64,000 nt of DNA, taken from the NCBI GenBank assembly GCA_976226885.1, contig OZ320319.1:22630001-22694000 (forward strand), written 5' to 3'. Below, in pieces: positions 21,501-34,700 of this stretch. The position numbers were made by a program, and so were the translations under genes. Below the pieces are notes generated by a model that made no database searches, was not told the origin of the DNA, and saw only the letters and a program-made list of their open reading frames with translations. Numbering within the stretch: position 1 is the stretch's first letter; every line of letters starts with the position of its first letter. The DNA is from Iphione sp. A-MEVVRFRX5 (lineage: Eukaryota).

Positions 21501-22258
21501 AGGAAGCAGCAACTGGACCAGATTTAGTAACAGTTTCGGTACCACATTACACCAATAGATGTACCATAAACCACACTGCAGCACATTGTTGCGAGAACGA
21601 CTGATCCAAGATGCCGAGATGATCTCATATTCATCCCAGCGATCACATCGGTCTTCTTCATTCTAGTACCGCCATCCATGAAAATGAAATGGCCAACTAT
21701 TTAAGTTTACATTGGTGCTTCGAGATGATGTTGTGGACGACACATTACAGCATGAAATATTGATCCCATGCCCAATACTATCAGTTGTTTATCCGGATGG
21801 TAATCCATACTCAGCCATCTGTCACCACCCTCTATGTGAAGAAAGTATCTTTATTGTAATATTTGTAGATAGTAACATTTGCACATGACCTAAAAACTAC
21901 ATGACAGCAAAAGATATTGATCCCAGGCCCCAAATCAACCCTTTGCCTATGTAAGAAAAGATCCAATGCTAATCATCGAATTAATCCAGTGACAGGACTG
22001 GTATGAAGTAACATTGGCCGGTCTAGTTAAGTTAATCTGGGTAACATCTTACAACAGAAACGGACTTTTTACCTGTGGTTACCGCTATTTAACTATCCAT
22101 ATTTATGACATTGCCAACACGAAAACTTCCAACATCTACCTTGTTATATAACAGTCACCTATACAATAGAATCTCTATTTGCTACCAGTGTAATTTCCAA
22201 CCATTCTGAAATAATATTGAACTTCTGACTTTTGGAATGTGTATCCAACACCCAAAAT

Positions 22259-23083
22259 TGTAAAGGACGAGGCCTGTAGTAGGGAGTTTGTAGTAGACTT
22301 CAGTATAGGATTTAAGGTAGGATTAAGAGCAGCCTCTGGCAGATAATAGGTAGGGAAACTTTTAACAAGCAATGACATGTGGCTAGCTAGAGCTCTGCTG
22401 TGAATCAATATAGAATCAATATCATGTATGAGTCTCATTAACCAAGGATATCATTCAGTGGGGTTCTCATTAAATAGAATTAAGCAGGATAGACAGGGGG
22501 CATGGAGAGATCACCACTGGTTGGAGCTGATATATCGTATCAGGAAATGATGAAACAAGGGCTGAGAAGGGTTTTACTTGGAGGTGAAGCATGGGTCATG
22601 AGCATTTAGCAGTATGGTATGACGTGATAGTAGAACAACAGACCATTCTGGTTCAATAAGGATATGCTGGCTCTAGTTAATAACTTGTATAATCCAGAAC
22701 TGATTGACGTCAGCAAGGTTTGGTTAAGATCACGTTGTTGGAAAGTGTCTGTATGTAGCTGTATATGCAAATATGATGATTTGATGAAATAAAAGTAAGA
22801 GCAGACTGACACTGACAGCATTCACAGAGACAGAGACTGGCTGAGCAGACCCCCTGATACGACAAGACATGGAACGACCAGGACTGAGGCTCATATTGCT
22901 ATGACATAGGTGTTGAGTGAAATTATTGGTGGGACTTCCCACTAGTATGTGATTAAGGAGAAGACAGGTAGGTCCTTCTACTTCATCTGTAGGTGTGGAT
23001 TAGCAACCCACAGGTAGCCTCTGGTGATGGAGATGCGTCCTGCCCCTGTGAGGAAACCTGGAGGAGGAACTGGTGTCCTTACA
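22259..23083 (+). repeat. 5' LTR (825 bp)
   Basis: Starts TGTAAAGGAC and ends GTCCTTACA (near-perfect terminal inverted repeat); AATAAA at 22788-22793; matches 30913-31737 except at 7 positions counted by eye. Confidence 0.97.
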
Positions 23084-23087
23084 GTTT

Positions 23088-23105
23088 TGGCAACGAGGAT
23101 GGGAT
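23088..23105 (+). other. Primer binding site, tRNA-Ser(GCU)-like
   Basis: TGGCAACGAGGATGGGAT lies 4 nt after the LTR and matches 17/18 to the complement of the metazoan tRNA-Ser(GCU) 3' end as I recall it (TGGCGACGAGGATGGGAT). Confidence 0.8.
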
Positions 23106-23239
23106 GTCATGGAAGTAAGGAGAGGAGAGGAAACTCCCCAGCCATGTGGTGCAAGTAAGTGGAATCACGCCATTTCGCAAGTAAGTGTTGTGAAGGAAAG
23201 AGTGAAGCAGTGAGCAGTATAGACAGATAGACAGCAGTC

Positions 23240-24222
23240 ATGGCACAGGCCCAACCAGCAGCAGCCGAACAGGGCGGCATACAGCAATGCAGGCTAACCT
23301 CAGAGAGTATACAAAACGAATGAGCCCTTGTGATGGAAAGGCTAGGGACGAGGTGAGGAAGTTCATTGAGGATTTGGAAGCAATCAGACAGTGGTTAGCA
23401 GCCCCTGATGCCATGTTACTCCCTGTACTGGGATATCTGACTAAAGGAACACTAAGATCTAGCATCCAGACATTTCTAGCAGGGAACCAGCTGGGGCAAC
23501 AGGCTACATGGCCCCAAGTAAAGGCCCATATAATAGCCACCTTTTTAGAAGAGGATGAAATGGAATTCAGACGCAATGAGCTAGAGAAGATGAGACAGAG
23601 GCCATATGAAACTTTAAGAGAGTATGGACAAGGATTTTTAGAGGCCATGAACAGGGCATACACCCCAGTTCAATTGCAGGACCCTTTAACAAGAGCACGG
23701 GTTATAAGGTTTTACATCCAAGGTATCAGCGATAGAAACATAAGAGAGAAAGTCCATCTCGTACGGCCTGCCACAATACCAGTTGCCATGGCACGTGCGA
23801 ACGATGTAGCCAGGTCGGTGACCCTGGCTAAAGAAGAGAATAGGGGCCCATGGCCAGGAGAGCAAGAGAAGGGGAGGAAGGAAGAACCCATGGAGATTAA
23901 CCTGGTTAGTGCAGGAGGGCAGTTAGGGGACAAGAAGTCGACTGAGGAAGTCATTGAAGAACTGAAAAGGCAGGTACGAGGGCTGCAGAAGCAGGTGACG
24001 AAACTAAGTAAGAAGGAGCCGGGGTCTGCACCACTACCATCACCAGTGCCCCACCAACCCCGTGTCCCCACTGCACAAGCCAGGCCAGACAGAAGACGCT
24101 GGGATGAGAATGGGACCCCCTATTGTCTGAGATGCGGGAGGCTAGGACATATTAGTCGCGAATGTGGAGGCAGAGCACCAAACCAAGTGAATGAGGTCAG
24201 TGAAGACAGTCAGGGAAACTAG
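23240..24222 (+). CDS. gag: Gag. Open frame from ATG 23287 (311 aa); probable original start at ATG 23240 cut off by a 1-nt deletion
   Basis: C-terminal CCHC knuckle CLRCGRLGHISREC, an EPMEIN motif, a retrotransposon capsid-like helical region, and position directly after the PBS. Confidence 0.9.
24213..24219 (+). promoter_or_regulatory. -1 programmed ribosomal frameshift slippery heptamer G GGA AAC
   Basis: X XXY YYZ heptamer in the gag frame immediately before the gag TAG. The -1 frame (GGG AAA CTA GGT GCC GTG) runs open into the pol ORF. Confidence 0.85.
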
Positions 24223-27200
24223 GTGCCGTGTTGGCCGAGCGGCCTGTCATCCATTTGTCCATTCATGGAGTCAATACTGACGCTCTGGTTGACACGGGGG
24301 CCGCCTGTTCCTTGGTAAGTGAAGACCATTTTCGTTTCATCTGTGGCCGAGTTCACCGGCAGCCAATACTTTCAGCTACACCTGCATTGTGTAGTGTATC
24401 GGGACATCACCTTCATGTGTTGGGAAAGGTGGTGCTGCCTGTAGGGGGTGGAAGGACATTTGAAGCAGTAGTTGTAAAAGGATTGCCCCATGATGTGATA
24501 GTAGGGGATGACTGTCTCCGGGATGGAGGAGCAGTCATTAACTACAATAGGCGGACTGTTACTCTGGGAGGTAAGGACTATCCCTTCCAGACGGCAAGAG
24601 GGATACCGGTTGCATGTGTTGGAGTGGGTACAAGGTGGGCTCACATATACCCTGAGGCGTTTGCTAACGAGACAGAGCCTCTGGGCTGCGTGAGTACTAC
24701 CTGTACCATCAACACAGGGAGACAAGGACCCCTCCACCAACGGGCATACCGAATGCCCTTGTCTAAGAGGAAGCTCGTTGAGGAAGAGCTCAACAAGATG
24801 CTTGCTGATGGGGTGATTAGGCCGTCTAGGTCACCGTGGGCATCTCCGATCACCCTAGTGCCGAAGAAAGATGGGGGAACAAGGTTTTGTGTAGACTATC
24901 GGCGCTTAAACGCAATTACCGTGAAAGACAGTCACCCTCTTCCACTTGTTCAAGACATTTTTGATCAGTTTGGTGGCAGCACGAAATTCACAACCTTAGA
25001 TCTTAAAAGTGGATATTGGCAAGTACCGATGAATGAGGACTCAATAGAGAAAACGGCATTTGTTACTCATAAGGGACTGTATGAATTTCTGGTTATACCA
25101 TTTGGACTGTGTAACGCCCCAGCGTTGTTTCAACGGTTGATGCAGGAAGTATTGCATGATTTGATTGGACAGTGTGTGATGGTACATCTAGATGATATAG
25201 TAATATACTCTAAGACTGATGAAGAACATGTGAGGAACACAAGAACGGTGTTGGAACGACTTGTTGAGGCCGGCGTGAGGTTGAAACCATCAAAATGTAC
25301 ATTTGATGCAGAGGAAGTGAAATTGTTGGGATACGTCGTGTCCAGGGATGGTATCCAGTCAGACCCTGATAAGGTGGCGGCTATCCGCAACTTGGATACG
25401 CCTGCCACAGTAAAGGAGGTGCGAAGTTTTTTGGGAATGGCTGGTTATTACAGACAGTGTGTAGAGAACTTTGCCGCCATTGCCGCACCTTTGACAGAGC
25501 TGACAAAGAAGAATGAGAGATCGGAGTGGACTGAGAGGCACCAACGAGCGTTTGAGCAGCTGAAGGCTCACAGGTAATGACTCACCCCAACCCCAGTAAA
25601 CCTTATAAACTCTATACCGATGCATGCGACTATGCAATAGGGGGCATATTGGTACAAGAGGTGGATGAGGTGGAGCGAGTTGTGCAGTATGTGTCGAAGA
25701 AACTCGAAGAGCGACAGAAGAAGTGGGCTGTGATTGAGAAGGAGGCCTGGGCTGTAATATACTGTTTGAAGAAGCTGCGCCCCTATCTGTATAGAGCACA
25801 GTTCACCATCTTAACTGATCATAAACCTCTCAAGTCTTTGTTTTTACAAGAGGTCGCAAATACTCGGATTCAGCGGTGGGCAGTGTTGCTCGAAGAGTAT
25901 GGAGCTCCCATTGAGTATAGGCAGGGATCCCGCAATATCAGAGCCGACATGCTCAGTCGGATAAGATCACCCGCTGAGGCCTGCCTTATTGATACCCCAG
26001 CTCGGTGGACTGTTCCGCAAGAGGAGGCAGAGGACGAGACACCTATTCCTTGGGATGCAGATGGGCTAGATATCGAGCAGCTAAGACGATGGACGAATAT
26101 GAGAAGGGCCGGGATGGGAAGGATGGTCAGTACATCCTACGGGGAGGTCTCCTCTATGATACCTCTGAAGAAAATGGGGCCACCCCCTACCCTCGGCTGG
26201 TCCTCCCTCCCTCTCATCGATGGAGAGTGATCCGTCGGGCACATACTGAAGTTGGGCACCAGGGGGTGAGTAGGACTCTATGGCGACTGAAGGAGGCTTA
26301 CAAGTGGCCAGGTATGAGACGGGACGTGAGGGCCACCTTAGCCCGATGCTCTCGCTGCTCTATGCATCGGGATACCCAACAGCACGCACGCCCTGGGGAA
26401 ATGCCCCTGGCAACATATCCAATGCAAATTCTGGGGATGGACTTGACCGGGCCTTTTGAGATGTCATCTGAGGGTAACCGGTATGTACTGACTGTTATTG
26501 ATCACTGCATGGGATGGGTGGAAGCCAAGCCTATTCCATCAAAAGAGGAGCGGAACGTCTTAAACTTCCTAGAGAGGGAGTTTATTCCACGGTATGGTAC
26601 ACCAGAAGTGATTATTACTGACCAAGGAGGTGAATTTAATGGTGAGGTTCTGAACAGTTACCTGAAGCAAATGGACATTGATCATAGGCGAACCACCCCT
26701 TACCATCCCCAAAGCAATGGACGAGTGGAGAGGTTCCATCGCACACTGAAGAAACTCATCAGGAAGTTAGTCAATGGTTGCAGTAGCTGGTGGGAGGACG
26801 AACTAGGGAACGCCCTCCTGGCCCACCGGATATCTACGTCAGTTGTAACAGGATACACACCGTTCTTCCTGATGTACGGGCGGCAACCAAGGGCACCGAT
26901 GACATCAATGTTGCGGCGCCTGGAGGGTCACGACCCCACTGTGGTGAGTGAGAGGTTGGACTCTTTGGTAAGAGCTCTGCAGGAGGCGGCCCGGCGCACT
27001 CAAGAGTCATGAGAGCTCAACCGGAAACGACTCCAGGCCCGTGCATCGAAACAGGAGGTGCAACCAGGGGACACAGTGGTCCTGAAGAATAACAGGGCAG
27101 CGCAATTTGATCCAAAATGGCACACCGAGTATGAAGTCATCCGTGTTTCAGGACCAGTAGTGCGTTGCCGACATCAGCGGACGGGTGCTATAAAAACGGT

Positions 27201-27624
27201 CCATCGGTCACAGATTCGGATTGTGCCAAGGGATCTGGTGTGGGACGTTCCCCCACCATTGCCACCCGTGAGACCAAGGCAAAGAGCTTATCTGCCCCAC
27301 GCAGTTAAGTCGAGGTACGAGGACGACCCTGATTGGACTCCACCCTTGCCTTTGCATTTGCCACGCCCATCCCACCCACCACGCATGAGCACCAAGCGGA
27401 AGGGGGAGCCAATCGAGCAAGAAGAGGCTCTCAAGCGACAGTGCACTGCGAGGGCCGAGCTAACTGAGGAGCTGATCGACACCGACCCTATTCCGCTGAG
27501 GAAGCGCGTGGGGGAGGACATTGGCAGCGGACAGGGAGCGACTTCCAGCAAAGGACCATGCATTTTGTGTGCTGGACTCTGCTCTTGCTTTGTGGTGCAG
27601 TCACAGCGACAGCATCACTACTAG
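24213..27624 (+). pseudogene. pol: pol (protease-RT-RNase H-integrase), disrupted
   Basis: LVDTGA (PR); VDYRRLN, LDLKSGYWQ, PFGLCNAP, HLDD (RT); LYTDACD, TDHKPL, ADMLSR (RH); H-x-H/C-x2-C, DLTGP, TDQG, YHPQSNGRVERF (IN). Frameshifts near 25570 and 26088; in-frame TGA at 27010-27012. Confidence 0.95.
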
Positions 27625-29537
27625 AGGAAGATGGCATCTTGGTCACTGAGATGGGGGCTGGACGTGAAGTGGTTGGAACATGGACTGTCCTAGTCACGAT
27701 CCGAGAGCCCCTGCCAACAGAAGTCAGGAAACTGACGGAGACAGTGCGAGCATACCTTGAACGTGCGCAGGGTATGGTGTCCAACCGGACATACAAGATG
27801 TGGACTGGGAGGATCAACCAGGTTGGGGACGCCTTGCCTGACGAGTCACCCAGTGATAGTAATCCTGACCGACGGAAGCGCGGTATCATCGACGGAGTTG
27901 GGCGGTTAAGTAATTGGTTATTTGGAACCGCCACTGAAGAAGAAATTCAGAATTTGCAGAACATTGTAGAACAGTTAAGGGGGGCTGAGGTTGAACTTGT
28001 GCATGCGCACAATGCATTGGTGACACTGGTTAATAAGACGATATGGACTCTCAACAGACAAGGACGGCAGTTGCAGATTGACGAAGACCACATACGAACA
28101 TTAGAAATAGCAGCACAAGGGTTAGACCGAGCTGTAGCATTAATGGGTAAGCAGTTGACAGAATTAGAGGTTGGACAGGAAGGAGATAGGGTGTTAAATG
28201 AACTGGAAACGATCTACAGAAGTTGGAAGAACAAACACGAACTATTCATTGACCAACGGCGCACACTTGATCGTGGATGGTTGACGGTTGATCTTCTCTC
28301 GGCTGAACAATTAACTGAGGTTTTAATGACACAAGAGGGGGAGCTAACATCACATTCCCTCCCACTCCATTGGTACTATCAAAATGTCATGGTTGAATTA
28401 TTGTGGTCGAAAAAGAATGAGTTTGTATGTAAGGCAGATATTCCAACGGTGAATGATGAAGAGTATATTCTGTATTCCATTTAGTCTGTACCAGTTTACA
28501 CGGGTGTTGATGATGTTTGGCAGAGGACAATTGGTGTTCCTGACAAGGTAGGTTGGAACACGCGGAGGGGAGGTATTATTGAAACATCAGAGTGTTATGG
28601 AGGTAGCCCTATAGTCTGCCCACCCACAGTCCATCACCGTCAGGAGCAATGTGTTACAGGGATCATCACGGGCCAGCAACAGCAACTTGAAACATGTAAG
28701 GTTGAATTGTTTTCTGATCCTCGCATCAGTGTTGCATACAAGTTAAGCCAAAATGTATATTTGTTTTCAGGAAGAAATGATTCTGATGTTTCTATACAAT
28801 GTCTTGGTCACCAGGAGAGACGGGAAGTAATAGGAAGGGCAAGAGTTTTCCAAATTAAACCAAGCTGTATAGCGCAGACTGAGTCTTGGCATATAGCTGG
28901 AGAACATATCCGTCAAGTGGCATTAGATAATGCCCAGGAGACCGAAGTATCACAAGTAATTGATTTCGGCTTTAATATTCGAAAATTGGACGATTTTAAA
29001 AAGGTAAAGGAGCTAGTTCGGCATCAGCCTATAACACTGGAGGCGGGTGATCAGAGGGCATTATGGGTTGAACCACCTGTTTTGGGAAAGAAAACTTTGG
29101 TTATGGGTTCATCCATTGGATCTGGCATATTTGTGGTTATTGTAGTAATCTTTGTTATTGTCTGCTGTTGCTGCCTGCGTCGAAAAGGGAGGAACTTCCT
29201 CACGATGGATTGCTGGACACAGGCTGAGGCAAAAGGTAAGGGAACACCAGGCCTGCGACTTGCTAACTTGGTCAAGTTGCAGGAATTGTCCGAAGCTAAG
29301 AGCACTCAGCCATTGCCAGCTGCTCAAAAGGTTGTCAGGGATATCACTCCGCGTCAGGAGTCTGTCTCGCCGGGGAGTGCTCGGTCCTCGCGGGGCTCCC
29401 CGCTGATAGACAGGAAAGTGGAAGCTGGCATGGCACCTGTGCAATCATCTTGTGGGGAATCTGTAGCTAGCATAACTAGTGGGTGCCTAGTAACTGATGA
29501 GACGCTTGGGGAAGCGCCTCGCAAGTACCCTTGGTAA
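27558..29537 (+). pseudogene. env: env, F-type class I fusion glycoprotein (baculovirus F/errantivirus-like), with one in-frame stop
   Basis: Signal peptide MHFVCWTLLLLCGAVTATA; furin site RRKR (27870-27881) followed by fusion peptide GIIDGVGRLSNWLFGTAT; heptad-repeat region; TM segment GIFVVIVVIFVIVCCCCL. TAG at 28482-28484, after which the same frame continues into the 28707-29537 ORF. Confidence 0.9.
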
Positions 29538-29589
29538 AGCAGACCTGTGTTTCCCTGATAGGGTATGGCAACTTACCTAATGGCATAGT

Positions 29590-29750
29590 GTCTGTATCTC
29601 CCCATGAAGAATAGGATACCGCCTATTCATTGACAAGGTAGACCTCGAAGTGTTCTTTGCATTACTTGGTACCTGTATTCCCCGCGAAGAATAGGATAGC
29701 GCCTATTCACTGGTCAACATTCCTGGAGTGTCTTGAGCATTGCTTGGTGG
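29590..29750 (+). repeat. 80-bp imperfect tandem duplication, each unit carrying a GAATAGG-N6-CCTATTC hairpin
   Basis: Hairpins at 29609-29628 and 29689-29708, exactly 80 bp apart. Confidence 0.85.
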
Positions 29751-30009
29751 ACCCTTTCGGATTGCGTAGTGTGGCGGTTGTGAGGTTATTCATTTACAAG
29801 TAGTGGTGTTCTCCTATTGTTGTTGGTACCTCACAGCCGTCCGCACCCTTAGTATTGTTAGGGTTGTTTACGGTTGTATTATTATCATAGCATTAGTGGT
29901 TATACAACTTCTATTCTTGCAGTTATATCATAGCCTATAGTAAGTCTATATAATCATAGTGGTAAGTCTGTATAATCATAGTAAGTTCTTAAGTAATAAT
30001 ATTATAACC

Positions 30010-30867
30010 ATGGGAGTAATTGACCTAGAAGGGGTTAGTCTTACGCGATTAGCACATCATAGTAAGTATTTCCAGGCCCTGTTGGAGTATGATGGTATTG
30101 ATGAAGAACATGTTTGTGAACTACCCCCAATTTTTGACAAAGAGGAGTATATGAAAATCTTAAAACTAATGGGTTCTGACGTTAGCGACCTCGAGGTGAC
30201 TGCTGGAGTGTGGGCCTGCATGTGGCATGGCCAGGCTAAAACATTCCTAGAATTTATCAATTTCTTTGCGTGTGACAACTTGTTCATGCATCTGTTGGAA
30301 TATGGGATAATTCACCAGCCGTGGCAGGCACATGACTTCCTGGGGGAGGTCTTTGAGCTGTACGGCACCGGTGATCCTCGTGGTTCCCTTGCTCTGAAGT
30401 TTCTATCAGAATATGCAAAGTATTGCCCCGAAATTTTGATCCAGAATATTAAAAATAAACAGGCCAGACGGACATTTTCTAAGGGAAAGATCCGTTCTGT
30501 TCTACGAAGTTTTGAACGGAGCGAACTCTACAGAAGCAGACAGCGAACCACAGCATGCTGTACCTGTAGGAAGCCTATTGTGTACGTGCAGAACTCCGGA
30601 TGGCACATTTGGCAGGCAAGCCGGATGCCATGCTGCGGTGCGGTAGTGCATGGGTACTGCTTTTGGGAACTAGTTGATGCCTGGGACTATTGTCCGAAAT
30701 GCGAAACCGTGTTCGAGGAGGACGGAACCCTGACTCCTCGGGTGGGCCTGAGTGTCTACCATGTCCTGTCCCAGGTATTGGACAGGAGGGAACGAGCGAG
30801 GGCCGAACGCCGTGAGGCCGAGGGCATACCACCGGAAGTTGTTATCCCACCGCCGCCTCGGGGGTGA
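30010..30867 (+). CDS. ORF4, accessory protein (285 aa): BTB/POZ-like N-terminus plus RING-type zinc finger
   Basis: Open frame with ACCATGG Kozak context. RLAHHSKYFQALLEY...ELPPIFDKEEYMKILKLM...FLEFINFFACDNL resembles the BTB pattern. C-x2-C-x21-C-C-x4-H-x2-C-x10-C-P-x-C at 30556-30702. Domain calls are by motif recognition only. Confidence 0.7.
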   Translation: MGVIDLEGVSLTRLAHHSKYFQALLEYDGIDEEHVCELPPIFDKEEYMKILKLMGSDVSDLEVTAGVWACMWHGQAKTFLEFINFFACDNLFMHLLEYGIIHQPWQAHDFLGEVFELYGTGDPRGSLALKFLSEYAKYCPEILIQNIKNKQARRTFSKGKIRSVLRSFERSELYRSRQRTTACCTCRKPIVYVQNSGWHIWQASRMPCCGAVVHGYCFWELVDAWDYCPKCETVFEEDGTLTPRVGLSVYHVLSQVLDRRERARAERREAEGIPPEVVIPPPPRG

Positions 30868-30898
30868 AGTAGATTTTGGAATCCCGATTCCAAATCTT

Positions 30899-30910
30899 AA
30901 GTGGGGGGGG
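30899..30910 (+). other. Polypurine tract
   Basis: AAGTGGGGGGGG, 2 nt before the 3' LTR. Confidence 0.85.
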
Positions 30911-30912
30911 TA

Positions 30913-31737
30913 TGTAAAGGACGAGGCCTGTAGTAGGGAGTTTGTGGTAGACTTCAGTATAGGATTTAAGGTAGGATTAAGAGCAGCCTCTGGCAGATAA
31001 TAGGTAGGGAAACTTTTAACAAGCAATGACATGTGGCTAGCTAGAGCTCTGCTGTGAATCAATATAGAATCAATATCATGTATGAGTCTCATTAACCAAG
31101 GATATCATTCAGTGGGGTTCTCATTAAATAGAATTAAGCAGGATAGACAGGGGGCATGGAGAGATCACCACTGGTTGGAGCTGATATATCGTATCAGGAA
31201 ATGATGAAACAAGGGCTGAGAAGGGTTTTACTTGGAGGTGAAGCATGGGTCATGAGCATTTAGCAGTATGGTATGATGTGGTAGTAGAACAACAGACCAT
31301 TCTGGTTCAATAAGGATATGCTGGCTCTAGTTAATAACTTGTATAATCCAGAACTGATTGATGTCAGCAAGGTTTGGTTAAGATCACGTTGTTGGAAAGT
31401 GCCTGTATGTAGCTGTATATGCAAATATGATGATTTGATGAAATAAAAGTAAGAGCAGACTGACACTGACAGCATTCACAGAGACAGAGACTGGCTGAGC
31501 AGACCCCCTGATACGACAAGACATGGAAAGACCAGGACTGAGGCTCATATTGCTATGACATAGGTGTTGAGTGAAATTATTGGTGGGACTTCCCACTAGT
31601 ATGTGATTAAGGAGAAGACAGGTAGGTCCTTCTACTTCATCTGTAGGTGTGGATTAGCAACCCACAGGTAGCCTCTGGTGATGGAGATGCATCCTGCCCC
31701 TGTGAGGAAACCTGGAGGAGGAACTGGTGTCCTTACA
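30913..31737 (+). repeat. 3' LTR (825 bp)
   Basis: Direct repeat of 22259-23083; AATAAA at 31442-31447; followed by the AAAT TSD. Confidence 0.97.
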
Positions 31738-34700
31738 AAATAACACTGCCAGTTGTTTGAATTCTGTCAGCACACTGTATACACCTAGTCTTTCTGTTTG
31801 CACAATATGCTGTAAATGTATACTGATTTTACCTTTCTTTAATCAGTGTGAAATCCAATCGGGCTCCCAGGTGATGTATTTGTCTGGCTAAACTGTGTGT
31901 GCTATGGCCAAAAACGTTCACAAACCATGGACTGTTACTACGTAACAGTCCTGGCTCAGAACAGCTGAAACAAACACGTTCCCCTTTGTGCTTCTGCATC
32001 TAACAAAAAAAAACACTTTTACTACTGGAGAAACGAGGACATGCAATAAACACTGTATTTCATACTCCCTAGTTTAAAAAAAATAAACAGGCAGATCATC
32101 CTGGCAATTAGGTCTCAGCATGTCCGCATGTTACGCAACCATTTAAATTCCCCTGTACTTTACAATCCACCCCTAAGAAAAAACAATTCCTCTTTGATGG
32201 TTTCGGTAAATCTTTGCCCATAATTAGCGCCGTGACATGCAGGCTTGCCGTTAGGGGCTCACGACTCCCTGCTTGCCCCGAGCGGTCATTCAGTCGTGAT
32301 TAAATACCATTACTTTGAAGGCAAGAGACAGGACAATCATTCTAGATGAATTACATGAGAAATTTCAATCAAACACGTTGGAAATGGTCCTGTTTTAACC
32401 GTTCCAGGCTGAGACGATGATAATTCTGCACATTTCACTGGTCCATATAATTAGTCTTCATTTAAGTGAAGGTGGTAATCTCAGTCATTATTTGAAATAA
32501 GGCTATATAATGATACTCACAAATAATATATATATATAAACAATTTTCATGTTGTTATATATCTACAGGCCAGCACTTGTAGACAATGTCTGCATCTCAA
32601 ATTGTTTTGTTTCGTGAAAGAAATAGGATATGATCTCAATTACTTGAACAATTTTATTCTAATCGGACGGGCAGTAATTTGATCCTGAGTTTACTTTGCT
32701 GGGTGTGATTTAATACTTTCCATTACAACTGGACGCTAGAAATAATTGTCTTAAAACTGAGTACCTGACAATATCTGAGTTTCAGAAAATACATATCCAG
32801 AGGGTTTAGAAACATGTCTGGTACAATATAGCGAAGCGATGACGACGAAATATTGTATTAGACCACTCTGCTTTTAATAATTTTCTAATTGTCTCAACTT
32901 TCTGTCTTTTTGTTCACGGGGAGATCTCGATGTATTCACAGAATACTATGAGAAGCGAATAAACCGATTGAAATCGACAAATAATCAGCAAAGGACTGAA
33001 CAATATAGTAATGTAAACAGACTGGAAAATATACGGAGCGTAAAACCATATTGAGGCAAAACTCCTGTGGCATCATCTGTCGAAGCCGTAAAGTTATTAT
33101 ATCGAATGTATCATTATGACCGTTTAAAGATTAAGATCTGATCTATAGTCTCCATTCGAGAACAGCTGCCCCTCTAAGTAGTACTTACAATCATCCAACA
33201 TACAAGATGCCTACCGCTATCTGCGACAGATTAAGGCTCACTATCGTGTACAGCAGCAGCTTTGAGGGCACTTCTACGTGCAATATCGTTATTTTTAGGC
33301 TTCAAACAAAGGGCAGGATTAAAATGGTATTAATCTGAAAACACACGACAGGCACTTTCAGGAAATCGGCGTTCCTCTGTCACTATCTGCAGCTCCTTCA
33401 AGCAAAATGTGTACTTTTACTATTTAGTTACGCAAAGGTTTCAAAGTCACACTGTAACGGGTCTTTTTACCACTCGTAGATGTGTAAATTGTATTAATGA
33501 ATGTTCCACATGTAACAATAATTTCATTAGATAGGAAAATTATCATAATTGATAATAGTCTACCAAATGAATATGATACCTTTGAATGACACCCTATCCT
33601 CAGGCTTCTTTCTAATAATCCTTAGTTTAATAATGTCGAGTAAAATATCCCTCTGCATACTGCGCCTAGCCGAGTAAGTATCCTGGCCAGTGGGGAAGAA
33701 AAAGGAAAGATTTATACCAAGATTTTGCAAACATCCGCTCTCTTTCATACATGTGGGCAGCTGAAATAGTTCCACGTCTTCCCACTGGGAGGCGCGCATG
33801 GTATTGCCCATGATTCACCTGCAGTCTCCGGAGAAATCGTGCTTGAAGACGGAAGAGAGGACGTTACCGTTGGCATGAATTTAAACAACTACTTGTTTGC
33901 CTAACACGTACCACAGGTGTGCAGCCAGGCAGTGATTCATCTTCCCGAACAAAGCCAACGCCCGACGTCGTCTTGTTAAACGTCTGTATCGAGTGTCAAG
34001 GGTCCATAGTTCAGGTTTGAGTATTATATGCAGCACGAGGATCGGACATCCTCCATTATGTGAGTCTTCACAGATCTTTTTTCTTTCATCATTTATATGA
34101 TGCATTGTACAGACATGACGTTATAAATGAGTACTTTCAACTTTGGTTTTATGGCTGAAAAAAAACCTTGGGACGTGACGGCCAGGGAGGTGAGGCAAGC
34201 ATGTAGGTATTGACCACAGATTTCCATGGGATAAGGGCCAACTTCCACACTTACGTTGTTCGGATTGCACCGCATTAGCGTGGCATCAGGGTTGCATCAC
34301 ACTAATCCAGTAAGTGGCTTTTCCTGCATACTCCCGCAATGATGGTTCCCTCTGCTTGAATTTGGCTAGCGTTGTGTGAGTGAATTTCCCACCCTTTCCC
34401 ATTTGTCAGAGGACAAAGTATGTATTGTAATTTTGGAACATGTGCAGTTTTCCCTTAAATAAAATAGACATGATCTAACGTATGTTCACACAGATTTTTC
34501 TGTGCTACAACGGTCATCTGCTCTTTGCTACTTAAGCGTTTGTATGTGTTTGCATGAAAATCATCAGCAGTGTCTGAAAAGGAACGATGCAAATGCAGTA
34601 CACAAATGTAACACAGGTATAAAGACGTCCTTATTGATCATCACCTGTTGGTTTAAAAAAGTAAGGCAAACACAGCAAAAATACAATGCATATAAAACAA

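Follow-up and report, generated by a model that had tools for sequence, protein, structure and literature searches.

An Intact Open Reading Frame inside a Gypsy-Type Provirus

The subject of this study is an open reading frame (ORF) carried by an integrated long terminal repeat (LTR) retroelement of Iphione sp. A-MEVVRFRX5. The sequence analyzed, hereafter the window, is a stretch of 64,000 nucleotides (nt) of contig OZ320319.1 (assembly GCA_976226885.1, positions 22,630,001 to 22,694,000 of the forward strand). The carrier is an LTR element of 9,479 bp (22259–31737) with gag, pol and env genes, and the ORF is located between env and the polypurine tract (Table 1). On the plus strand, the frame is open from 29959 to 30867; its first ATG, at position 30010, lies in a strong initiation context (ATAACCATGG) and opens a frame of 285 amino acids (aa) plus a stop codon, with no internal stop.

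The ORF listing and the stop count confirmed an earlier reading of the letters of the window (the original prediction), which had reported an intact 285-aa ORF at this position. Its placement inside a provirus was also right, as the ORF lies within an LTR pair flanked by an AAAT duplication, together with a stretch resembling a primer-binding site, a polypurine tract, and gag, pol and env in between. The description of the gene as intronless gained support because the initiator methionine is shared by at least 90% of the relatives described below. By contrast, the claim that this was the only unbroken gene of the element proved wrong, since gag is likewise without a stop. A caution that intactness alone is not significant was well placed: given that pol and env, about 5.3 kb in length, contain at least four lesions, the chance that an ORF of 0.86 kb stays unbroken is about 0.5, and therefore the intactness of this single copy proves nothing. 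Because pol and env of its provirus are already broken, the window copy is probably a relic rather than an active gene. No second copy of the ORF was found within the 64-kb window.

The ORF Belongs to a Conserved, Previously Unnamed Protein Family

A phmmer search of 1.84 billion representative proteins with the ORF product returned 27 matches at E ≤ 0.001, with 12 of them at E ≤ 1e-10 and a best value of 1.5e-38. True relatives, either full-length or fragments, accounted for 25 of these 27 matches and aligned over the length of the query; the other two (P0008 and P0026) were unrelated repeat proteins and were excluded from the alignment. The finding of about 25 relatives, the best of them at the E-value given above, excludes a chance ORF and shows the gene to be real and conserved within a family that had not been named before. 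None of the family members carried a name or a precomputed Pfam domain. A word-indexed protein search retrieved nothing for a single protein and almost nothing for two alignments, and the family was detected only by exhaustive HMMER search.

The relatives were found on contigs from metagenomes or assemblies, of which several are marine, and are 139–358 aa long (mostly 250–330 aa). In the alignment of 24 family members (A1), identity to the window protein ranged from 18 to 33%. Outside the zinc ligands, S157 was present in 22 of the 24 members and P274 in 15, and, in the rows that include the N-terminus, Y20 was found in 20 of 20, S18 in 17 of 20 and P39 in 21 of 21. The late-domain motifs PPxY, PTAP and YPxxL were absent from all 24 members. 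A neighbor-joining tree gave support to three clades, namely the window protein with P0001, P0002 and P0003 (78%), a clade of retroelements around P0022 (100%) and a clade that includes Maverick-borne P0018 (94%). The tree gave no support to the deep order, nor with it to a direction of transfer between element classes.

Kinship of the C-Terminal Finger to RING-H2 Domains

The proposed zinc ligands of the ORF product are C183, C186, C208, C209, H214, C217, C228 and C231, and their spacing (C-x2-C-x21-C-C-x4-H-x2-C-x10-C-P-K-C) is exactly as had been claimed for a RING-like pattern. Seven of these residues were retained in all 24 members and the eighth, C208, in 23. When A1 and a finger-only profile (A3) were compared with the Protein Data Bank (PDB), all matches at E < 0.01 were RING-H2 E3 ubiquitin ligases; HRD1 (1.5e-5), RCHY1/Pirh2 (1.4e-3) and AMFR/gp78 (5e-3) were followed by weaker matches to RNF126 and the Arkadia group, and no PHD finger was listed. 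In the alignment with HRD1, C209 stands opposite ligand 3, H214 opposite ligand 5 and C217 opposite ligand 6, with the same distances from C209 to H214 (five residues) and from H214 to C217 (three residues). Furthermore, the Pfam family zf-RING_2 (PF13639) matched four of the 24 members, with a best E-value of 8.9e-5. The window protein alone gave only an E-value of 0.066 to 6f98, the HRD1 RING structure. The residue before ligand 2, which we take to be an E2-contact position in known RINGs, was V, I or L in 15 of the 24 members, and a Pro followed ligand 7 in six of them.

In the AlphaFold2 (AF2) model, the finger was predicted to form strands within residues 178–201 and a helix at 215–224; it thus has a beta-hairpin, and the helix starts at H214/C217. 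Foldseek placed this finger, in a model that does not contain zinc, on the HRD1 RING (6f98) with a probability of 0.98, a template modeling (TM) score of 0.56 on the target and an E-value of 0.23.

Taken with the profile matches to RING-H2 ligases and to zf-RING_2, this fold match supports the RING reading of the original prediction. Its designation of the ligands as being in C4HC3 order fits the letters, although not the kinship, which is with RING-H2 and not with PHD or RING-CH. A PHD finger (C4HC3), which had been named as an outcome that would speak against a ligase, was rejected in view of the adjacent cysteines (a spacing of 0 instead of 2–4) and of the absence of PHD fingers from the matches listed in the PDB profile searches. 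Sequence comparison thus supports a finger that is kin to RING-H2 and variant at ligand 4, where C208, directly before ligand 3, is the only candidate substitute.

Predicted Fold of the N-Terminal Half

The stretch LAHHSKYFQALL, which had been likened to BTB/POZ, is present at residues 14–25. With the A1 alignment as input, AF2 produced a model with a mean predicted local distance difference test (pLDDT) score of 91.6 and a predicted TM score of 0.78; the model obtained without an alignment (pLDDT 46.5) was not used. Residues 1–88 were modeled as a strand, two helices, a strand and three helices, an order that fits a BTB core, and residues 89–176 as helices at pLDDT > 90, with helices up to residue 147 and then a long helix at 158–176. 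Beyond the finger, the model contained a final helix and a Pro-rich tail, which appears packed rather than disordered because residues 261–285 reached a pLDDT of 92–95.

In a Foldseek comparison with PDB, this model gave as top matches the BTB or BTB-BACK domains of SPOP, KBTBD2, KBTBD4 and vaccinia A55, in addition to the HRD1 RING, and the alignments to BTB-BACK targets spanned 170–200 columns. Against BFVD, poxvirus BTB-Kelch and giant-virus BTB proteins came out on top (E 0.04–0.3). The best PDB match of an N-terminal-only profile (A2) was the BTB domain of NAC1/Miz1, collinear over three segments that comprise the S-x-Y-F helix, the next strand and helix, and a later helix. The part of the original prediction that concerned BTB is therefore plausible but not proven: the leading fold and profile matches are BTB domains, although all of their scores were non-significant and Pfam did not recover the domain. 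A divergent BTB-like domain in the N-terminal half is probable but not established on the basis of the model and the profiles.

Homologues in Related Retroelements

The genomic contexts of the relatives were retrieved by look-up of exact protein identity and covered at most 6 kb on each side. Two of them, L013 and L016, derive from separate samples and are 99.87% identical. In both, the homologue is followed by about 65 nt, a G-run tract and an LTR start that resembles that of the window element (TGTAAG-type), and beyond it by an LTR end and a primer-binding site that match those of the window, and then by gag and pol. From this layout it follows that the homologue is the last gene before the 3' LTR, in the same position as the window ORF. 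The equivalent placement of a homologue in a related gypsy element supports, and extends, the assignment of the ORF as an accessory gene of the retroelement. The end of the 5' LTR together with the stretch resembling a primer-binding site (about 23077–23105) was 86% identical over 29 nt to L013, and no other non-coding segment still matched that element. In L013, the stretch of more than 1.2 kb that precedes the homologue (1–1265) is devoid of an open frame of more than 60 codons; the corresponding spacer in the window is 472 nt long.

Further retroelement contexts were found in L006 and L004, so that the question of whether homologues sit in LTR elements is answered in the affirmative for L013/L016, with these two as additional retroelement contexts. 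In L006, the homologue stands after an ORF whose N-terminal part matches the C-terminal region of the window integrase (3e-8). L004 contains the closest relative of the window ORF (35% identity) and has a gene order unlike that of the window, in that an env-like ORF (1307–2128) begins 56 nt after the homologue. This ORF encodes a leader, N-glycosylation sites, an RHKR site followed by a hydrophobic stretch, and heptads, and had no detectable similarity to the F-type env of the window.

Homologues in Maverick/Polinton-Like DNA Elements

PolB and an integrase constitute the hallmark gene pair of Mavericks/Polintons. Six contigs from one assembly (L007–L012) each carried a copy of the gene coding for an identical protein. 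In five of them, the homologue was located downstream of PolB or its remains, and the PolB gene was intact (1,261 aa) in two contigs and present as broken pieces in two or three. On the other side, all six contained an opposite-strand block that ends in an rve integrase with a chromodomain. PolB and an rve integrase accordingly occur together in a multicopy unit (L007–L012), as exemplified by L008, in which PolB matched PF03175 at 6.7e-40 and the integrase matched rve at 2.6e-11. The integrase of L008 (10788–11906, minus strand) has its chromodomain at the C-terminus (Pfam Chromo, 4e-5), as in chromoviral gypsy integrases. In L010 (1–12987), inverted integrase-bearing blocks lie on both sides of the homologue and replace PolB, which denotes a rearranged copy. 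Within the stretch of up to 6 kb read on each side, no inverted repeat was detected in L008 and no Pfam match was obtained for the neighboring ORFs of the Maverick-like copies.

In L002, an 18-kb scaffold, the homologue lies close to the end and four ORFs upstream of the gene for a PolB of 1,198 aa, and in L001 it lies beside PolB debris amid repeated fragments. An array of 15-nt tandem repeats occupies positions 1–218 of L002, upstream of the homologue and at the end of the stretch read. Among the contexts that did not reveal a carrier, L021 (298–2065) contains the P0003 homologue as a head-to-tail repeat with a period of 1,456 nt. The 104 codons of the second copy that lie on this contig match the first exactly, as would be seen in a tandem array or an assembled small circle.

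The carriers of this family of 270–330-aa proteins are errantivirus-like Ty3/gypsy LTR elements with env and Maverick/Polinton-like DNA elements. The family is accordingly carried by two unrelated element classes, env-bearing gypsy-type retroelements on the one hand and DNA elements, which the original prediction had not foreseen, on the other.

Divergence and Selection

The window element and L013 differed to very unequal extents along their lengths, with identities of 20% for the ORF, 38% for gag over its full length, 61% for protease and reverse transcriptase (PR-RT) and 69% for RNase H. The divergence of the ORF is far faster than that of gag and RT, which fits a protein at an interface with the host.

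Between the ORFs of L013 and L016, four synonymous differences and one non-synonymous difference were counted, whereas gag and PR-RT showed none. The ratio of non-synonymous to synonymous rates (omega), put forward beforehand as a check, was 0.065, and the binomial P for such an excess of synonymous changes was 0.008. This provides a hint of purifying selection on the ORF from very few sites. Over the 4,526 aligned bases of the two loci, five of the six differences fell within the 924-nt ORF (P 0.002).

Other Features of the Carrier Element

The coordinates of the ORF, its predicted parts and the remaining features of the element are compiled in Table 1. LTRs, a target-site duplication, a stretch resembling a primer-binding site, a polypurine tract, gag, the order protease, RT, RNase H and integrase, and an env gene mark the element as Ty3/gypsy with env, and the env product combines a furin site, a fusion-peptide-like stretch and, on its C-terminal piece, a transmembrane stretch as membrane anchor. 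The two LTRs differ by seven mismatches (99.15% identity). Lesions in pol comprise at least two frameshifts and one in-frame stop, and env has one in-frame stop; the pol pieces matched protease and RVT_1 (4.6e-36), RT_RNaseH (1.8e-35), Integrase_H2C2 (8e-16) and rve (1.5e-12). The classification of env as F-type rests on the RRKR site, the fusion-peptide-like stretch and a sub-threshold Baculo_F match (0.0011), in comparison with the description in PMC13524379. Nothing relevant was obtained when the env pieces were searched against PDB.

Table 1. Window coordinates of the ORF, its predicted parts and the features of the carrier element.
Feature	Position	Strand	Basis
ORF under study	30010..30867	+	285 aa plus stop, unbroken
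Candidate BTB-like core, residues 1–88	30010..30273	+	AF2 secondary structure, Foldseek, weak NAC1/Miz1 match, conserved residues
Predicted helical half (BACK- or 3-box-like) and long basic connecting helix, residues 89–176	30274..30537	+	AF2, Foldseek
Putative variant RING-H2 finger, residues 178–240	30541..30729	+	ligand columns, PDB profile matches, AF2
Predicted C-terminal helix and Pro-rich tail, residues 241–285	30730..30864	+	AF2
Target-site duplication, left (AAAT)	22255..22258	.	identical 4 bases at 31738–31741
5' LTR, 825 bp, TG..CA ends	22259..23083	+	direct repeat of 30913–31737
Stretch resembling a primer-binding site, after 5' LTR	23084..23105	+	match to related element L013
gag, 311 aa, unbroken	23287..24222	+	Pfam Retrotrans_gag 8.4e-7, CCHC knuckle, no internal stop
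pol (protease, RT, RNase H, integrase), broken	24228..27624	+	Pfam matches on separate ORF pieces
env, F-type, broken	27558..29537	+	RRKR site, fusion-peptide-like stretch, weak Baculo_F
Spacer between env and ORF, 472 nt	29538..30009	+	direct repeats, pyrimidine tract, GTAAGT/TATAA motifs
Polypurine tract AAGTGGGGGGGGTA, abutting 3' LTR	30899..30912	+	G-run likewise after homologous ORF in L013
3' LTR, 825 bp	30913..31737	+	direct repeat of 5' LTR
Target-site duplication, right (AAAT)	31738..31741	.	matches left copy

The spacer between env and the ORF contains two direct repeats of 38 nt (29592–29629 and 29673–29709) that are 89% identical. The predicted RNA fold of this region showed nothing unusual (z −0.21), which gave no support to an RNA element in the repeats. 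A pyrimidine tract that ends in CAG (29910–29922) lies shortly 5' of the ATG, and GTAAGT occurs three times between this tract and the ATG (29940, 29962 and 29981), with TATAA after the first two (29949 and 29971) and a third TATAA at 30003. Such motifs may serve the ORF in splicing or as a promoter, or they may be meaningless. Rfam and tRNA scans of the whole window gave no matches, and its other long ORFs matched no Pfam family.

Discussion

On balance, we favor the reading that the gene is an accessory gene of integrating virus-like elements and that its product is, most likely, a self-contained RING E3 ubiquitin ligase, and we hold this view with modest confidence. In such a protein, the finger would recruit a ubiquitin-charged conjugating enzyme (E2), with zinc bound at an altered second site, and the BTB-like half would serve for dimerization and/or for binding of the substrate, or of a cullin. 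As substrate, we would expect a host factor that restrains these elements, in keeping with the role against host defense put forward in the original prediction; a protein encoded by the element itself is a less likely target. The carrier element would benefit from the activity of the ligase.

A number of observations weigh against this reading. With regard to the finger, the column of the canonical ligand 4, two residues after ligand 3, is most commonly occupied by S, V, A, N or Y, and by A in the window protein. With ligand 4 missing, and with two adjacent cysteines an unusual arrangement for the binding of one zinc, the second site may have changed or been lost. Arg or Lys seldom follows the last ligand in the family, which leaves the linchpin without a basic residue. 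The window protein has Thr before ligand 2, and on its own it reaches no Pfam threshold. As for the N-terminal half, the Foldseek matches to BTB domains in PDB were non-significant (E 0.14–0.5, TM 0.25–0.45), as was the match of A2 to NAC1/Miz1 (E 0.16), and Pfam BTB (PF00651) did not appear for any of the 24 members in a listing of 25 families with matches at E ≤ 1. Furthermore, the selection test counts five sites, and the contexts L005, L017, L018–L020 and L021 were uninformative as to the carrier; tblastx comparison among the uninformative loci gave ORF-to-ORF matches only, plus a PolB-to-PolB match for L001.

The same departures from a canonical RING could point to a non-ligase regulator, in which the finger would bind protein or nucleic acid and the BTB-like half would dimerize, as in BTB-zinc-finger transcription factors. 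Such a protein would control the transcription, RNA export or packaging of the element, and not ubiquitination. In line with this alternative are the absent ligand 4, the non-basic linchpin and the Thr at the E2-contact position of the window protein, the long basic helix before the finger, the weak matches of two of the 24 members to PHD_ash2p_like (2.5e-4), and the presence of baculovirus immediate-early RING proteins among the weak BFVD matches. However, every PDB match at E < 0.01 was a RING-H2 E3 ligase, with no PHD finger listed, and the predicted finger has the hairpin and central helix of a RING, which makes a regulator of this kind, in our judgment, rather unlikely. In favor of a regulator it may also be noted that extra ORFs of LTR elements with roles in RNA export are known, for example CERV of Cer1 (PMC10309623).

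A second alternative starts from the fold of the other half of the protein, since the best fold matches are Cullin-3 (Cul3) adaptors (SPOP, KBTBD2, KBTBD4 and vaccinia A55 in complex with Cul3) and poxvirus BTB-Kelch proteins are the top matches in BFVD. According to it, the BTB-like half would dock host Cul3, like the BTB-Kelch proteins of poxviruses, and the finger would serve as a substrate-binding or regulatory module without being catalytic. Yet these BTB matches are non-significant, and a borrowed Rbx1 would be unnecessary because one domain of the protein is itself related to the RINGs of ligases; we therefore regard a Cul3 substrate adaptor as improbable.

That the ORF is a passenger, i.e., a captured host gene or a chance ORF without a role for the element and intact by luck, as the even odds for an intact copy, the decay of the element and the variable position of the gene (downstream of env in the window, upstream of it in L004) might suggest, is very improbable and has been largely refuted by homologues in no fewer than three additional contexts in retroelements and three in PolB elements, by the invariance of the ligands across the family, by the synonymous excess between near-identical copies, and by the fact that none of the contexts looked up placed a homologue in an ordinary host-gene setting.

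Beyond the favored reading of an element-borne RING ligase, it is conceivable, although we rate it as tentative and rather doubtful, that the BTB-like/RING family is a counter-defense module that is exchanged between the gypsy-type retroelements and Mavericks of animals and diverges fast in an arms race with a host factor restricting both. If a conserved fourth gene of probable ligase type is indeed shared with Mavericks, "simple" elements would carry host-manipulating accessory genes, as complex retroviruses do, and gene modules would pass between RNA-based and DNA-based mobile elements. The gene would also provide a starting point in the search for the host factor that elements of both kinds have to overcome.

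Comparison with Known Systems

With regard to cellular proteins, the family shares with HRD1, gp78 (AMFR) and RCHY1 the ligand spacing with a long first loop, the His at ligand 5 and the helix after ligand 6. These ligases are its only significant sequence relatives in PDB (E 1.5e-5 to 5e-3), and 6f98 is the best fold match of the finger. In contrast to them, the family has no His at ligand 4 and has a vicinal Cys before ligand 3; it is devoid of membrane spans and of CUE or CHY modules, its N-terminal half is unrelated, and its carrier is mobile. The likeness to SPOP, KBTBD2/4 and vaccinia A55 lies in the predicted order of secondary structure over residues 1–176, and the poxvirus members are themselves virus-encoded. 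Unlike these BTB-BACK adaptors of Cul3, however, the family has no Pfam BTB match and neither a Kelch nor a MATH domain, and it carries a RING of its own.

Virus-encoded RING ligases and the viral hijacking of cullin ligases are well known in large DNA viruses and lentiviruses. Among the former, herpesvirus ICP0, poxvirus p28, baculovirus IE2/PE38 and nimavirus RING proteins are presumed to act on host factors. As virus-carried RING proteins they resemble the present family, and baculovirus and nimavirus proteins were among the weak BFVD matches; they differ in their carriers, which are large DNA viruses, and in their N-terminal domains, and no sequence relationship of the family to any of them was found. 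The lentiviral Vif, Vpx, Vpr and Vpu are likewise encoded by accessory genes near the 3' end of a retroelement and represent the proposed theme of turning the ubiquitin system against host restriction, but they lack a RING and rely on cullin ligases of the cell. None of the searches, in which these proteins were not compared directly, returned a similarity to them.

As for the two carrier classes themselves, full-text literature searches found no precedent for such a gene in gypsy-type or Maverick elements. Envelope-bearing retroelements of the gypsy type have been described with three genes only (PMC13524379), in a text where the words RING, BTB, accessory and ubiquitin do not occur. Near PolB, Mavericks and adintoviruses have accessory ORFs that vary, among them those for "Oncoid" proteins, which contain paired CXXC motifs, and neither a RING nor a BTB protein is mentioned in these descriptions (PMC8097293, PMC8502044). 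Oncoids are defined by LXCXE-type motifs, unlike the RING/BTB-like family, and an Oncoid reading of the ORF was rejected because LxCxE occurs in just one of the 24 members. The sharing of extra genes between unrelated carriers does have a parallel in bdelloid rotifers, in which, according to Rodriguez, Kenefick and Arkhipova (2017, PMC5408684), extra ORFs common to unrelated retroelement classes were read as modular gene sharing. The ORFs in that study are GDSL esterases and DEDDy exonucleases distributed among retroelements, whereas the gene described here encodes a putative RING protein and has a retroelement as well as a DNA element as carrier.

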